The notes below the pieces were generated by a model. That model was not told the origin of the DNA. It did no database searches and worked only from the letters and a program-made list of their open reading frames with translations. From Malacoraja senta (Eukaryota): a DNA stretch of 64,000 nucleotides. Both the position numbers and the translations under genes were made by a program. The stretch lies in assembly GCA_038087875.1 (NCBI GenBank), contig CM075979.1:8866001-8930000 (forward strand), given 5' to 3'. Positions within the stretch are counted from its first letter, which is position 1. Each line of letters begins with the position of its first letter. This document shows positions 8,943 through 62,803 of the stretch, piece after piece.

Positions 8943-9123
8943 GGGGGGGGGGGTGTCAAGGAAAGAGCGTTCACGTTGCAGCCCTGATTTCACTAATCTT
9001 TCCACCACCACGCACAAGAAGCACAAGAAGCGCAAGACAGACACCATTGTATGCAGATGCCGAGAAGTGTGTTCAGCTCTGACTGAACAACTTCTAATCT
9101 TGTGTGTGGACTCGATAAGAAGA
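8943..9123 (+). mobile_element. Ribozyme-headed SINE-like retroposon, family 1
   Basis: TSD AGAGATAA at 8935-8942 and 9124-9131; ends GATAAGAAGA; homologous to 60817-60964. Confidence 0.85.
8950..9003 (+). ncRNA. Minimal HDV-like ribozyme, family 1 (weakened P1)
   Basis: GGGGUGUC-AA-GGAAAGA-GCG-UUCACGU-UGC-AGCCCU-G-AUUUCA-CUAA-UCUUUCC. Confidence 0.7.
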
Positions 9124-9529
9124 AGAGATAAAGGAAATACTTATTTTAGAATGAATGCACAGGAACTGGAATGTTTACAAGTACAGGGTTCTTGGAATAG
9201 ACCAAATGTTTATTTGGTTATGTTACAAATAGTGCAGGCTTTGAATTCAGAAATAGATTAACCTAAGTTTTCAGATAAAATAACTAAGAGTTGATTCTAT
9301 CAGGATTGTCAACACTGCAGGGTGGCATTTTAAGAAAAATGTTTAATATATTGGGATGTATTATTCAAGTTTAAAAAAAATCATATTTATATTTTGGGGA
9401 AATGCCCAAGACTGATGCAAATGGCTAATTTCCCTTGAGGAACACAAATCTAAGGGCACTTACATTGACTAGTTAATTTCAAATGTATTTTCAGCAATTG
9501 TGATTAATGTGACAATGGGAAATGTGTGA

Positions 9530-9725
9530 GACACAAGAGACTGTAGATGCAAGAATCTGCAGCAAAAAACAAGCTGCTGGTGAAGATCAATGGGTCAGGC
9601 AGTGTCTGTGGAGGCAAAGGGATAGGTGACGTTTCAGGTCTTGCGTCAGGACTCGGACCTACACCTTTGCCTCCACAGATGCTGACTGGCATATTGAATT
9701 CCTTTAGAAACTTGTTTTTTGCTCC
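9530..9725. repeat. Palindromic (head-to-head) Penelope-derived short element
   Basis: TCTGTGGAGGCAAAGG ... CCTTTGCCTCCACAGA inverted arms. Confidence 0.65.
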
Positions 9726-22142: not shown

Positions 22143-23529
22143 CGAGGAATTTAAAATGTATCTATCAAAACGCTAGGTAATATGGATGGGAACTTGCAAC
22201 TGATAGAGTTCCATTATGTTGCTAAACATGATGCTCTTGTTGGTTAATGTTATTGATAGAAAAAGTGCTGTCAATATAAGCTTGGCTGGCTGTTGTACTA
22301 AATTCTACATTTGGTGCATACTGCAGCCACTATAGTCCTCCCATTGATAGTACATTTGAGGATTAGTGGCAAGAGACCAACCTGATGAATTCTGTTATCC
22401 TAGGCAATTTTGGACTTGAATATTATGTCAGCTTTACATCCAGGCAAGTGGAGAATTTGGCACTGTGATGTTGAAAGTTACTTTATTGGTGATGTGGACA
22501 TGAGTCTTGACCAGATAAACTACCAATGGCCTGGAAACTGAGTACTCCAGGGCAATGTTTGTCATAGTCAGGGATTTCAACCAGAGCAGCCTCACAAGTG
22601 AGCTAGCAAAATATTATTAATATGTCTCCTGTCTCGTCAGAGGCTCAAACACCATCAACCACTGCTGCGTAAGCATTAAAGAAGCTTACCTCTCCGTCCT
22701 CCTGCATTTTGGAAAATCAAACCATACGGCCTTACTCCTGACAAGCTTACAAGTTGAAACTGAAGCAAGAAATTGTGTTATGCTAGTCTGATGGAATAAA
22801 TGACTCCTGTGTGACTGCCTGACGTTGGTGAACAGGTTTACATTCCAGTACCCAGCCAAAATGCAGACTATTATCAGTATATAGAGGACTACATGCCAAA
22901 GAAGTCATTCTGAGTGTTCCACAACTATAAACCACTCCTTATTGACGGCAAAGTCTGAGGCTTTCAAGCCGGGTAACTCTGACCTGTACAGGAAATACGA
23001 CCTTTGCAAAGTCATTAGACTGACCATACAGACACCCATCGATTGTGGTAAGGTTTGAGTGCTGTAATGAGCTGCAAAGCGAAGTTGGGCAGAATCTTTT
23101 GTAACAAAGCATCCCTCCCCGATGAGTCCTATGCATTCAGTGTTCATTTTGAATAGAAACTCAATGGAATGTCATCACCCACCCCAACAGCCTTGCGGTC
23201 ACCTATGCAGATGTCAGATCAACCTTTCCTGAGATTGTATCCTCGTAAAGCAACTAGCCTGGAGTCCCCGGCCGTCTCCTCCGAACCTGCACGGACCAGC
23301 TGAAAGGAGTATTTGCAGATGCATCTAACCTCTCCTTACTCCAATGTGAAGTCCCACATGCTTTAAGAAGAGCACTATCATGGTCCTGAAAAGCGCTATA
23401 TAAATAAAATATATTATTATTATTATTATTATTCTGGTGTCAAAGAAAAAGAATGTCCCTTAATGTAAGAGACATCTTCTTGTGTATGGCATGCACAGCC
23501 TAAAGTTGTAGGTCAACTTGCTCTATTTG

Positions 23530-23750
23530 GCAATAGACAATAGACAATAGGTGCAGGAGTAGGCCATTCGGCCCTTCGAGCCAGCACCGGCATTCAATGT
23601 GATTATGGCTGATCATCCCCAATCAGTACCCCGTTCCTGCCTTCTCCCCATATCCCCTGATTCCGCTACTTTTAAGAGCCCTATCTAGCTCTCTCTTGAA
23701 AGCATCCAGAGAACCTGCCTCCACCGCCCTCTCAGGCAGAGAATTCCACA
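23530..23750 (-). mobile_element. CR1 3' end with (CTATTGT)n tail, nested in the ribozyme SINE
   Basis: WNSLPERAVEAGSLDAFKRELDR on minus strand. Confidence 0.85.
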
Positions 23751-23784
23751 TCTTGTTTGATTGCATTAGTTCCACATCTTGTTT

Positions 23785-23838
23785 GATAGCATTAGTCGAA
23801 ACAGGGTGGACAACGTGAAGGCTGCAATCTCCCACCCC
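23785..23838 (-). ncRNA. Minimal HDV-like ribozyme, family 2 (degenerate P3/P2)
   Basis: GGGGUGG-GA-GAUUGCA-GCC-UUCACGU-UGU-CCACCCU-G-UUUCGA-CUAA-UGCUAUC. Confidence 0.68.
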
Positions 23839-25284
23839 AAAAGAGACATGGTGCACATCAACTCCAGACTCCCAGACAGCCTTGATCCATTGCAATTTGC
23901 CAACTACCACAGCAAGTTTATGGCAGACACCATCTCCCTGGTTCTGTACCCATTCCTGGAACATCAGGATAACAAGGAGGCCTACTTCAGACTCCTATTT
24001 ATTGACAATAGCTCCACCTTGAATACCATAATTTCAATTAAACTCGTATCCAAACTCCTGGACTTAGGATCGGCATCCCCTCTGCAACTGGATCCTCGTC
24101 TTTCTGACCCACAGACAGCAGTCGGGCAGAATAACCAAAAGTTTGAAAGCAAGTACTACGAGATTCATGAGCCGCTTTCTTCTTGCTGTTATCAGACTCT
24201 TCAACAGACCTCTCACATGTTTTCAAACAGATCTCTCAAGGATAAATTCCTGATCTTCCAGCCAACCATGTTGCAACCTTTGTTGTTTTTATCTGCACTT
24301 TAAAAATTTAAATTCATCAATATGTTTCTGATTTTCTCCTGCCTTGACGTACTTGTGTATGGTATGATTTGCCTGGATAGCACGCAATAATTTTTTTTAA
24401 TTGTTTCTCGGTAGATGTGACGATAGTAGACCAATACCAATACTAAGATCACCAAATGGCAAGTATTAGTCAAATGAATTAACTGTTACAAACCACCCCA
24501 ATCAAGGATCTTGCCAGGTCTTGCTGAAAGCTGGTATCGTGAGTTGAACATTGCAAAATCATTGAGTGATTTAAAGAGAAAGAAGGTATTTATGGTACAA
24601 GTTGAGATGTTTGAGCTAAAGTCACAACCCTAAGATACTGTTTCTGTGTTTGCAGAGGGCTGCATGGTTTGCTGTCCTGAATCATGTTTTTTTTTGCTTA
24701 TGTTTGGAAACACTCCAGCCACTGGAAAGATTCTTTATATTTCTGAATAATGTCAGCTGTTGAATGCCATCTTGAAGTATAGGTTTCTGGCGTCTTCTAT
24801 TATTTAGTTCTGCCATCTATGCAAGTAGGTATCATTTGATCTCATCAGATAGTAGGGCTTTCAAAGTATTTTACTGGAAAATATTACTTTCCACTTGGCA
24901 ATGCACAGAACCTCCAGCGTACATATGTGAATGTAAATCTCCTGAAGTGTTGTTCATCGTCACAGTGCTAATGCTCTGTTGCTAAAGGATAGGAATGTTC
25001 AATGTATCATTCGGCTGCTATGAAGTCTAACTGCTTCCAAAAGATCAAAGTTTGGTGGTTGTTTTGATGAGGGAACTTTCCAGAAGTGCTTATCTGCTTC
25101 AAATACAGGATGAAGATAATTAGCAAAACAGTCATAGAGGAAATAAACAAAATTTATTGTATGCTGTTAAATGGTAGTGGAGCTAGATTTGATGTAACTT
25201 TCAATATGGAATTGAATATGTACTGAAATATGAATAGAAAAAGTGTGTCACTATGACTGATATAGCAATGGGACAGGGGATAAT

Positions 25285-39614: not shown

Positions 39615-41552
39615 CCTCTTCTCCACAGTGTTCAACCTCCTCAAGCCTCGAGCCAACACTCTCCCTACCTCCACTCCGGATCTCTGCAACTCATTCCTCC
39701 ACTTTTTTGCTGACAAAATCAGCACCATCTATCAATCTTTATCCCCTGTACCCGACTCCCCAGCATCTACTCCACCACCTACCAAGGCCCCTCCTTTCAA
39801 CATCTCCGCTGACCTCCTTACCCCTCCTCCTCACTGCTTCCTCTCCCAGTTTGACCCGGTCACCCCTACTGAAATCTCCAAACTCATCAGCTCTTCCAAA
39901 CCCACTACCTGCTCCCTCGACCCTCTCCCCACTCCCCTGCTGAAGTCCTGCCTCCCCGCTCTCTGCCCCTACCTCACTAATCTCTTCAACTCCTCATTGT
40001 CCCAAGGAATTGTCCCCTCTGCTTTCAAAACTGCTGCTGTCACACCAATCTTAAAGAAACCTGGTCTTGATCCCTCCTCTCTCATTAACTACCGCCCTAT
40101 CTCAAACCTCCCCTTTCTTTCAAAAACCCTGGAGCGTATCGTCGCGTCACAACTTCATTCCCACCTCCTCGCGTATAACCTATTCGAACCCCTCCAATCT
40201 GGCTTTTGCCCCCTCCATAGCACAGAAACTGCTCTCCTCAAAGTCCTCAATGACCTCCTTACCTCTGCTGACACTGGCTCCCTCAATATCCTCATCCTCC
40301 TCAACCTGAGTGCAGCCTTCGATACCGTGAATCATAAAATCCTGCTCACCAGACTTAGGGACCTTGGCATTGAAGGTTCTGCACTCAGCTGGCTCCGTTC
40401 CTACCTTTCCAACCAATCCCACTTCATCTCTCTCCACAACCACACCTCTGCCACAGCCACTGTCACTCAAGGCGTTCCCCAAGGCTCCGTTCTTGGTCCC
40501 CTCCTCTTCATCATCTACATCCTCCCCCTTGGTCATATACTCCGTCACTTCAACCTGGACTTCCATTGCTATGCTGATGACACCCAGATCTATCTCAGCA
40601 CCAAGTCCCCCCACCACCCCCCTCTCTCCCATATCAACTCCTGCCTGTCAGCCATCAAATCTTGGGTGCAACTCAACTTCCTTAAATTAAACAGTAACAA
40701 AACATAATTTCTCCTCATTGGCTCCAAATCAACACTCACTAAAATTAACAACCCCACTCTCACTATTGACGGCACCACTGTCTCCCCATCTCCTCAGGCC
40801 CGCAACCTTGGCGTGATCTTTGACTCAACCCTCTCCCTTGAGCCTCACATCCGCCATGTTGTCAAAACATCATTTTTTCACCTCCACAACATTGCCAAAA
40901 TCAGATCCTCTCTCACACCCCCCGCTGCTGAAAGACTCATCCATGCCTTCATCTCCTCCCGACTGGACTACTGCAACTCTCTTCTCTTTGGCATTAATTC
41001 CAGCAACATCAACCGACTCCAACTGGTCCAGAATGCAGCCGCCCGACTCATCACCCACACCAAATCCTGGCACCACATCACCCCAGTTCTCAAAGAACTT
41101 CACTGGCTTCCCATTTCCCACCGGATCATCTACAAAATCCTGGTCCTCACCTACAAAGCCCTCAACCACTTGGCCCCCCCTTATCTCACTGACCTCCTCT
41201 CCCCCTACCAACCCTCACGGTCCCTCAGATCCACATCAGCTGGTCTCCTCTCCATTCCGAAATCAAACCTCTGCACTTTTGGAGGCAGAGCCTTCTCCAG
41301 GGCTGCTCCCAGGCTCTGGAATTCCCTCCCACAACTGATCCGAAATTCTGAGTCCCTCACCATCTTCCAGTCCCGCCTCAAGACCCATCTCTTCACCTCT
41401 GCATACCCTTAGTCCCATGTCCCCCTCCCCTTTGCATCTCTGTCTTACTGCTCTATTTTTTAAATATTTTTTTTTTACTCTCAATGTAAAGCGACTTTGA
41501 GTCCTTGAAAAGCACTATATAAATAAAATGTATTATTATTATTATTATTATT
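39615..41552 (+). mobile_element. L2-clade LINE, 5'-truncated, RT frame with a single stop
   Basis: ORFs 39628-40707 and 40813-41412 are in the same frame; NYRPISNLPFLSKTLE, GVPQGSVLGP, YADDTQIY, SRLDYCNSL; AATAAA + (ATT)n tail. Confidence 0.95.
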
Positions 41553-59570: not shown

Positions 59571-60578
59571 GTAGGTAGACTGATGGACAAACACAGTTGT
59601 ACTTTTTGTTTATCTACCAATACCATCAATAGCAAAAACTTGGCCATGCTTATTCATTCTTTATATTATTCTATTCTTTAATTCAGAGCATTCTTGACCA
59701 CAGCAATAAATAAAATAAATATACACTAACATTCTTCAGAGCCGTGTTACGGCTTTAAGGGTAACAATTGAATCAATATTGTTATGTGCAAGTATATGCC
59801 ATTTGAATGGGAGGGATGTTATAGTGCAGCTAATCAGGTAGCATTCGCTTGAGGTCTTCTTTGTATTTAATTCATTAAATAATTTAGTTGTACAATGATG
59901 TGTCACATGTTAGGAATACAGCACAGTTTTAAACAAATATTTCTGCGTATTCTATTCGTGGTTTCTGTTTATTCCTGACAATTTAGATAGTGCTGAAATG
60001 TTTTTCATGAATGTTCAATGTTAAATTTTACTAAGATTGGTTTAGTCTTGTGGGGGAAATATTGTGTGGAATTCTAAATAATGGTTATTTAGAATAACCA
60101 AGATTTCCATTAAACCTAAGTCAGTTATTCACAAATTAAGCTATCTAATCGGGAATTGTCTGGGATAATTTTGAGCATTTGATGTGCAAAAAGTTTAAAT
60201 GCAGTGACCTGCAGAATATTTCACAAATCCTGCTTTAACTGGCTGGGGCACAGAGTTCCTGTCAGATATTGTGATTGAAATGTGTGCTGAATCTTTTGAG
60301 CCAACAAAGGCGAGGGATGTGGCAAATATCCACAATATGGCATAAACCAACCCATACTGAATAGCTGGAGCCTGGCTCTGCTTTCCCCTGGTAACTGTAC
60401 CCCAACTAACTCCTACTAATAAATTAATTAATCATTTCCAGCAATTGGTCAAGTGATTATATTGTTAAATATAATTGATAATTTGATTAAATTTGATAAT
60501 TTGTTAAATTTACTGGGACAGAAAGATAGCTTAGTTTCCCATCTAAAGCTTGCTTAATGTTGCAAGGTTGAATTGAAT

Positions 60579-60721
60579 CATCTTCTTCTTGCATATGCCG
60601 TGCACAGCCTAACATTGTGGGACAACCTGTTCTATTTGATCTTATTTGATTGTGCATGCCGGGTTGATTGCATTCGTTGAAACAGGGCGGACCACGTGAA
60701 GGTTGCAATCTTCCACCCCAA
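60579..60721 (-). mobile_element. Ribozyme-headed SINE-like retroposon, family 2
   Basis: Direct repeat GTTGAATTGAAT at 60567-60578 and 60722-60733; (AAG)n tail on element strand; homologous copy at 23476-23838. Confidence 0.85.
60666..60719 (-). ncRNA. Minimal HDV-like (CPEB3-type) ribozyme, family 2, intact fold
   Basis: Minus strand GGGGUGG-AA-GAUUGCA-ACC-UUCACGU-GGU-CCGCCCU-G-UUUCAA-CGAA-UGCAAUC gives P1 7 bp with G1.U, P2 7 bp, P3 3 bp, L3 UUCACGU, J4/2 CGAA. Confidence 0.85.
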
Positions 60722-60816
60722 GTTGAATTGAATAATATCAAACAAAGCACAAGGAGTCCATTCAGCCCAACATGCCTATGACGTCTCTCAACAAAATATC
60801 CTGTCTTCCTTGCTCT

Positions 60817-60964
60817 TCTTATCGAGTCCACACACAAGATTAGAAGTTGTTCAGCCAGAGCTGAACACACTTCTCAGCATCTGTCTTGCTCTTCTTGTGC
60901 TTAGTTTTGCGTGGAAAGATTGGTGGAAACAGGGCCGCAACGTGAACGTTCTTTCCTTGACCCC
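60817..60964 (-). mobile_element. Ribozyme-headed SINE-like retroposon, family 1
   Basis: TSD TTCCTTGCTCT at 60806-60816 and 60965-60975; AAG tail; homologous copy at 8943-9123. Confidence 0.85.
60913..60964 (-). ncRNA. Minimal HDV-like ribozyme, family 1 (one P3 mismatch)
   Basis: GGGGUC-AA-GGAAAGA-ACG-UUCACGU-UGC-GGCCCU-G-UUUCCA-CCAA-UCUUUCC. Confidence 0.72.
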
Positions 60965-62803
60965 TTCCTTGCTCTGACCCATTGGTCTTGTATATTCCTT
61001 TTCACAAGTATATTTTGAATAATTCTTTAATGTTAATCAATGTATTATGTGCGTGAAATAAAAATTCTCAGCATTTCACCTCGGGCTATCATTTTCCAAA
61101 TAACCTGGACATTTTTTTTCCCAATCTGAATAAATGTTTTAACATTTTAAAATGTATCCTTTGGTATTGTGTTCTTAGAAGAATACTCGCAAATGATCTT
61201 CTCATAATTGAAGTCCTGTTTCCTAATTTTACTATGGTGAATCACTTTTACTATAGTAAATCACTTGCACTACTATAGTAAAATCTTTCTCCCCTTTCCT
61301 ACCTACTCTAAGTTCAGCTCTCTCGCCATTTTTTTGTTCATGACTGCTTCTGTTCCTGTTCGGTTTAAAGTTATATGGAAATCACTTTCCAGAGACTTGT
61401 GCTGCCAAAAAATGCACACAATATTCTACTGAGGCCTAATCAGTGATTTAGTCAATTTTAGGATTATTTGGTTTTGTGCTTTATTCTTCCATTTATTCAG
61501 CTTAATATCTCATTCCTTTTTCTAAAAGCTGGTTAACATATTGTGCTTCCTTCAAAGATATACATATGTGAAGCTCTGAATCTCACAATTACTCCCCCTT
61601 TTTACTACCAGTGAATGTTTAAGATTCTGCAGTATTCTTTAATGATGAGCACTAAATTCTACAAATCTTCTATCAATATTTATTCAAAAAACACTTTGAC
61701 TTATTCATCTCTTTCCTACTTGCTGTATGTGACATAGGTACCTTTGTCTTGTCTACATAATAGCTGTTTTATTCCGTTGTGAAATATTTTGCAATGTTTC
61801 TGTCAATACAGTTCTCGGTTAAATGAACAGTGAGGTTATTCTGAAAGCAATTAAGTTGTGGGCTTACTTATCAGCTGTAAGTTAAATTCATAGTCTTCAT
61901 TGTGTGAGCTGTCACCACAAGTGGGAGTCAGGTTGTACCAGGAAGAGAGCTGCCAGCAAGAATCGGGTCAGAAGTTGGGTTGGACTACTGAGTTAATAAT
62001 TGGCATTTGGCTGCATCTCTTGCCACCCCCATACGCTCTTTCTCCCCTTTCCTACCTACTTTAAAGTTCAGCTCTTTCGCCATTTTCTGTTCATGACTGC
62101 TATTCCTGTTCGGTTTAAAGTTGAATATTTTCGTTTATAGAATTGGCTTGTGTAATGTTTGGGGATGATTTCAGTGTTTATTTCTCTTCTGCATGGGGAA
62201 TAAATGTAATCAAGATTTAACAATTCTTTTGTGCACAGGTTAACATAACCTGCAAAATTATAGAAAATAAAACTAACCGGTTTCAATCAGTTTTGCTCAG
62301 TTTGTATACTCACATTTGCTTTTTTAGCTATTTGAATGAAATATTGTATTAACACTGTCTAATTCAGAGGTTATTTAGTTTTGTATTCATTTTATCCCTG
62401 ATTTAAAATTTCTTGGGTTTAAATTATATATTTCCCAAATACTCAGTATATGATGGAGCATTTTAAAATAGCTACATCATTGTCTAATTTTGAAATTAGA
62501 TCCTAAGACTTGAGAATCAAATGTCAGCTGGCTAATTATTAATTCAAGAATTTGCCTAAATGTTCGCAAATTATAAAATAATCCGAACCATACATTTTTA
62601 CTGTTCCCTTGGTATCTAAAACTTACAATAACATACCTAAAAGTGCATATTTGAACTATCAAGCTGCATACATACATTTTGATGAATATAAGAAACATGC
62701 TCAGCATAAGAAAACACGTGTTTGTTTGGTTCCAGAGGACATTCTGTGCTCTTCTTGTTACATTAAAAGTAAATGAACATTTAAAGTGATTTGTTTCCAT
62801 CAG

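Follow-up and report, generated by a model that had tools for sequence, protein, structure and literature searches.

Does a retroposon of only ~140 nt begin exactly where a self-cleaving RNA would cut, and could such a cut explain its 5' end? This question is raised by a short minus-strand element in a stretch of 64,000 nt from Malacoraja senta (GCA_038087875.1, contig CM075979.1, positions 8,866,001 to 8,930,000 of the forward strand), which was analyzed as a whole and is called the window here. A first-pass annotation, made from the sequence alone, had described the element as flanked by a 12-bp target-site duplication (TSD), with an (AAG)n tail and no A or B boxes, and with a 5' head that fits a complete minimal HDV/CPEB3-type ribozyme fold. 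This description is accurate in every detail. The two TSD copies are 12/12 identical and enclose, in minus-strand order, two T, a 54-nt head starting at the predicted first nucleotide after the cut (G1), a ~75-nt body, the tail and two extra bases (Table 1).

Table 1. Positions of the elements and other features in the window. Family 1 is the family of the element at 60721->60579; family 2 keeps the same core with different helices.
Position	Strand	Feature	Details
60722-60733	-	Upstream copy of the 12-bp TSD	ATTCAATTCAAC; identical to 60567-60578
60720-60721	-	Two extra T between TSD and G1	Not part of the fold; may be non-templated or junction bases
60666-60719	-	54-nt predicted P4-less HDV/CPEB3-like ribozyme fold (family 1, copy 1)	G1 at 60719; putative catalytic C44 at 60676; P2 3' strand ends at 60666
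60591-60665	-	3' body	Presumed recognition domain for the reverse transcriptase of a partner LINE (inferred)
60581-60590	-	(AAG)3A microsatellite tail	AAGAAGAAGA
60579-60580	-	Two extra bases	TG
60567-60578	-	Downstream copy of the 12-bp TSD	ATTCAATTCAAC
23475-23840	-	Family 1, copy 2 (older)	TT, G1 at 23838; tail AAGAAGA at 23481-23475; 8-bp TSD TGTCTCTT at 23848-23841 and 23474-23467
23745-23796	-	26-bp tandem duplication in copy 2	23796-23771 and 23770-23745; repeats J4/2 and the P2 3' strand
23531-23744	-	214-bp repeat nested in copy 2	Ends in (ATTGTCT)n-like units
60814-60964	-	Family 2 element	G1 at 60964; tail AAGAAGA ending at 60814; TSD GCAAGGAA at 60972-60965 and 60813-60806
8943-9126	+	Family 2, longer subfamily	11-G run at the 5' end; head ends at 9003; tail (AAG)3A; TSD AGATAA-like; P1 decayed
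39628-41545	+	LINE fragment	RVT_1 reverse-transcriptase ORF at 39628-40707 (E 1.5e-33); (ATT)n tail near 41540; unrelated to the AAG-tailed elements
9588-9696	both	Sub-threshold Rfam mir-3119 hit	41 and 33 bits (gathering score 80); probably a long palindromic hairpin or inverted repeat

First, we focus on the fold itself. Segmentation of the head by script gives P1 GGGGUGG/CCGCCCU with 7 of 7 pairs including the G1.U36 wobble at the putative cleavage site, J1/2 AA, P2 GAUUGCA/UGCAAUC with 7 of 7 pairs, P3 ACC/GGU with 3 of 3 pairs, L3 UUCACGU, G37, which is available for P1.1 with C22, a 6-nt linker UUUCAA in place of P4, and J4/2 CGAA. All 17 helix pairs are standard, and the strand order is that of the HDV-type nested double pseudoknot (P1-P2-P3-L3-P3'-P1'-P1.1-(P4)-J4/2-P2'). 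In contrast, the features of a canonical SINE are missing. ARAGORN finds no tRNA gene in 60300-61100, the best A- and B-box matches have 3-4 mismatches, and the Rfam searches give no small-RNA hit.

The resemblance is unlikely to be due to chance. We wrote a strict descriptor for a P4-less HDV-like fold (perfect P1 of 6-7 bp with G1.U, P3 of 3 bp, L3 of 7-8 nt containing a C, a G after P1, J4/2 of the form C-N-R-A, perfect P2 of 6-7 bp, short linkers), which finds one site in the window, 60719, and 7 sites in 544 first-order Markov simulated windows, or 0.013 per window. A looser descriptor additionally reported 18142 (+) and 43894 (-), but both were rejected because their P1 helices are AU-rich or unconvincing, their 'P4' regions are long and unstructured, and no repeat boundary coincides with them. 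Among all 4227 Rfam families, the HDV ribozyme model RF00094 is the best match to the 201-nt stretch around the head, aligning end to end over 60721->60664 with C44 under the cytosine of the model's J4/2. No hit reaches the gathering threshold, and the score of 21.7 bits is below the gathering score of 50 for RF00094 because the 35 model positions of P4 are replaced by 5 nt. Nested minimum-free-energy folding recovers only P1 and part of P3 of the head and is not better than shuffles, as expected for a pseudoknot. Among the heads and whole elements folded in this way, only the 3' domain of family 2 is notably structured (z -2.8).

BLAST and Rfam searches of the window reveal three more TSD-flanked elements with such a head. 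Copy 2 of family 1 also begins TT-GGGG, is 87.5% identical to copy 1 over the head and 82% over the last 55 nt, and matches the CPEB3 ribozyme model RF00622 at 13.6 bits. P1 pair 5 is U-A instead of U.G, which keeps the pair, while P2 and P3 each have one broken pair. Its tandem duplication lies on one side of the nested repeat and is followed by it at once, so it is not an ordinary TSD. The family-2 element lies only 92 bp upstream of copy 1 on the same strand and begins exactly at the G1 of its own fold (P1 GGGGUC/GGCCCU, J1/2 AA, P2 GGAAAGA/UCUUUCC, L3 UUCACGU, G, UUUCCA, J4/2 CCAA). It is the best CPEB3-model hit in the window, matching positions 1-78 of RF00622 at 24 bits (gathering score 35; E-value 1.8e-4 locally and 0.057 for the whole window), although its P3 is weak (A opposite C, C-G, G.U). 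The longer family-2 copy at 8943 was found only by the whole-window Rfam E-value scan (RF00622, 19.9 bits). It is 80% identical to 60964->60814 apart from a 25-nt indel, reflecting 25 extra nt in its body, and its P3 reads G-C, C-G, G.U. Hence, the HDV or CPEB3 model is the best, full-length but sub-threshold hit at all four heads, and the cytosine at the start of J4/2 aligns to the model's catalytic C in each. The shortfall in score goes with the deleted P4 (35 or 18 model positions replaced by 5). In the three heads aligned to RF00622, the 18-19 model positions of P4 are replaced by 2-6 nt.

Comparison of the two families supports the helices. Of the 7 P2 pairs, 5 differ on both sides and remain paired, and P1 pair 6 is G-C in one family and C-G in the other. 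These counts rest on four sequences, without formal statistics, and on our own segmentation, since a MAFFT alignment misplaced the single-base gaps of family 2. L3, the G after P1, and the C and AA of J4/2 are identical in all four copies, whereas the second base of J4/2 is G, U, C or U. J4/2 is thus CGAA only in copy 1 of family 1, while the others read CUAA or CCAA. The sequence after P1 is CUGU in three of the four heads and CUGA in the 8943 copy.

Does the family as a whole begin at G1? Public runs under at least ten coded organism labels contain 23-77% of the sampled 31-mers of the element, and contigs of four runs were aligned to 60300-61100 at 88% likeness or better. In the DNA-like run X36, 17,303 contigs were aligned, with a word depth of about 60-150 in the flanking single-copy sequence against summed depths of 0.4-11.5 million inside 60570-60731 and 0.07-1.1 million inside 60813-60974. 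Summed depth is not a copy number, yet the order of magnitude (a rough 10^4-10^5) agrees with four copies in 64 kb. The contigs diverge into unrelated sequence (flank agreement 0.33-0.40; 0.33-0.34 in X36) at 60719 (179 contigs in X36) and 60720 (197 contigs). The other three runs show the same two places, and run X17 also shows 60721. Family 2 diverges at 60964, its own G1 (163 contigs), and at 60814 (217 contigs), and contigs of family 1 lose likeness before 60581. Copies that routinely extend upstream of G1 had been named beforehand as grounds for refutation, and the contigs show that they do not.

The same contigs inform on variation within the head. Variants at 10% or more of the depth inside the ribozyme occur at only three positions, namely the second base of J4/2 (G, U or A), linker position 42, where the consensus is G and this copy therefore has a CpG-type change, and position 32, where G to A converts U5.G to U5-A. 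The ribozyme core has 14-28 times the summed depth of the 3' body, and breakpoints with consistent flanks occur at 60643 and 60650, both indicating that the same head is attached to several different bodies. One X36 contig joins 60719 to 60814, so that elsewhere in that genome a family-2 tail abuts a family-1 head, which could be an insertion into or next to an AAG tail or a composite element. Among the runs flagged as possible RNA, X16 and X24 look like DNA, and contigs of X17 continue upstream of G1. As assembled contigs, these runs do not bear on transcription of this locus or on cleavage.

Taken together, we favor, with a probability of about 0.72, that the element is one copy of a very abundant family of non-autonomous non-LTR retroposons, which we read as bipartite LINE derivatives with a P4-less HDV/CPEB3-type ribozyme, a ~75-nt 3' domain and an (AAG)n tail. 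In this view, the element would be transcribed as part of a longer host, intronic or read-through RNA, the ribozyme would fold co-transcriptionally and cut immediately 5' of G1, leaving a 5'-OH, and the endonuclease/reverse transcriptase of a partner LINE would bind the 3' domain and tail and copy the RNA by target-primed reverse transcription, producing the 8-12-bp TSDs and a DNA copy that ends at G1, sometimes with 1-2 extra T. What the analysis demonstrates is the fold as a sequence match, its conservation and covariation, the variable TSDs (12, 8, 8 and about 6 bp), the tails, which end in AAGAAGA in all four copies, the abundance, and the coincidence of family 5' ends with the predicted cleavage site in two families. 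The source of transcription, self-cleavage and mobilization in trans are inferred. This copy keeps every helix and the catalytic-position C and may therefore still be cleavage-competent, as P4-less HDV-like ribozymes self-cleave in vitro (bioRxiv 10.1101/2023.06.13.544163, citing Riccitelli 2014) and HDV-like ribozymes process the 5' ends of R2, RTE, baggins and L1Tc elements (PMC6765202).

Some observations do not fit this reading easily. Both family-1 copies in the window have TT before G1, and about half of the family boundaries in the contigs fall one base upstream of G1, more than AT-rich flanks alone would give. Cleavage alone does not explain this T, which could reflect non-templated A addition to the cDNA end. 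Moreover, BLAST of both families against the window finds only the four mini-elements and no partner LINE, and the only reverse-transcriptase gene in the window was rejected as the partner since it belongs to a LINE with an (ATT)n tail. The first-pass interpretation, a promoter-less SINE class released from host or intronic transcripts by self-cleavage and copied in trans by a LINE that recognizes the AAG tail, is hence supported only in part. The parts open to sequence analysis held, but self-cleavage, the lack of an internal promoter and mobilization through the AAG tail remain inferences, and 'a SINE class' overstates the novelty because bipartite LINE derivatives with a 5' HDV-like ribozyme are already known.

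Of the alternatives, an internal promoter survives best, although we consider it unlikely. The head might be HDV-like by descent while transcription starts at G1 from a promoter within it, the fold serving mainly as a protective or RT- or ribosome-binding 5' structure with cleavage secondary or lost. The first 77 nt of L1Tc/NARTc act as both promoter and ribozyme (PMC3383444), a G start is typical of polymerase initiation, and a promoter of the Pr77 type is not excluded here. However, there are no A or B boxes and no tRNA-like head, compensatory changes keep the whole double pseudoknot, and the catalytic-position C and the AA of J4/2 are invariant in all four copies while the base between them varies freely, a pattern that catalysis would select, but not a promoter. 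It is still less likely that the head is merely a conserved 5' UTR segment of a LINE and its deletion derivatives that can be drawn as an HDV fold. Short helices are easy to find, the Rfam hits are below gathering scores, and minimum-free-energy folding is not better than for shuffles, but the descriptor expectation is low, two families with unrelated P2 sequences share the architecture, the CPEB3-type L3 and a C-N-A-A J4/2, and the 5' ends of both coincide with the predicted cleavage site. That the 143-bp stretch is a 5'-truncated or internal fragment of a longer element is very improbable, for although most LINE-mobilized insertions are 5'-truncated and the head also occurs on other bodies, a perfect TSD brackets the element, copy 2 starts at the same base and hundreds of contigs from four runs diverge at 60719/60720.

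If the consensus cleaves, a 54-nt P4-less HDV-type ribozyme would be enough to drive massive amplification of a promoter-less retroposon in a vertebrate, whereas minimal ribozymes of this kind have so far been tied to gut phages. The family would provide thousands of natural variants for studying ribozyme sequence-function relations and a compact 5' processing module for retroelement-based RNA templates. It also provides a candidate evolutionary source for the CPEB3 ribozyme core, and such elements would escape SINE finders based on tRNA, 7SL or 5S as well as Rfam gathering thresholds. A more speculative and, on present evidence, unlikely reading is that these elements are the largest natural reservoir of HDV-type ribozymes in a vertebrate genome, at a rough 10^4-10^5 P4-less copies, and that their CPEB3-type core (identical L3, usually CUGU after P1, J4/2 of the form C-N-A-A with CGAA in some copies, and a matching P1.1 type) marks the retroposon lineage from which the mammalian CPEB3 intronic ribozyme, for which we found no stated origin, was later exapted.

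How does the element compare with known systems? HDV-like ribozymes at the 5' end of promoter-less non-LTR elements are established, and LINEs and non-autonomous SINEs use them in diverse metazoans (PMC6765202). What differs here is the combination of a vertebrate-type genome, a total length of only ~140 nt, the absence of P4, a CPEB3-type core and very high copy number. In the open-access literature, with Repbase and Dfam outside the search, we found no description of this combination, of such an element in cartilaginous fish or of a P4-less eukaryotic version. The closest precedents are NARTc, RIME and SIDER, the non-autonomous partners of L1Tc/ingi-clade LINEs in trypanosomatids. These are short, ORF-less, high-copy and dispersed derivatives that keep the 5' end of the LINE. 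NARTc shares the ribozyme L1TcRz, within the first ~77 nt, with L1Tc (PMC3383444), the ribozyme-bearing Pr77 hallmark is shared across the clade (PMC4035085), and the ribozyme releases the element from co-transcripts. Those heads double as an internal promoter and their hosts are protozoa. They are also longer, have A-rich tails and retain a P4, whereas the head described here is a 54-nt P4-less fold with a CPEB3-type core and an (AAG)n tail in an animal genome.

R2 SIDEs of Drosophila are internally deleted elements that retain the 5' self-cleaving HDV-like ribozyme and the 3' UTR bound by the RT and are mobilized in trans (PMC3414825). They are, however, specific for 28S rDNA, co-transcribed with rRNA and dependent on a restriction-like endonuclease. 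R2 SIDEs are low-copy, while the insertions here are dispersed, with variable TSDs and very high copy number. RTE, Ingi, Vingi and R2 are listed as the clades that make bipartite non-autonomous LINEs (PMC5786205). Those of the RTE and Vingi clades, such as WALLSI3, Bov-A and the Vingi-1_EE derivatives, likewise consist of only the 5' and 3' ends of a LINE, have microsatellite-type tails and occur in vertebrates, and some RTE families are predicted to carry 5' ribozymes, although this 2018 survey does not list Vingi among the clades with a 5' ribozyme (PMC5786205). These elements are longer than the one described here.

Minimal HDV-like ribozymes, known from metagenomes (drz-Mtgn-1) and as theta ribozymes of gut phages, also lack the P4 domain, retain the rest of the double pseudoknot and are proven active in vitro (bioRxiv 10.1101/2023.06.13.544163). 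They sit in phage genomes, often 3' of tRNAs where they process tRNA trailers, and have no link to retrotransposition. Only the P4-less architecture is shared, as no tRNA accompanies the element and exact-pattern scans of JGI metagenome contigs and IMG/VR for the conserved core gave 0 hits. The mammalian CPEB3 ribozyme (RF00622) has the same L3, the same CUGU after P1 as three of the four heads and the same J4/2 as this copy. Its P1.1 of one G-C plus a U-U pair, its U20.G25 wobble and C22 and A23 in L3 match the positions here, and the family-2 core is 19/22 identical to the Rfam consensus by our count. Yet CPEB3 has an 18-nt P4 hairpin and is a conserved, single-copy intronic ribozyme of mammals, whereas the element described here is a dispersed repeat with the fold at the head of a retroposon, so that the similarity is one of the core only.
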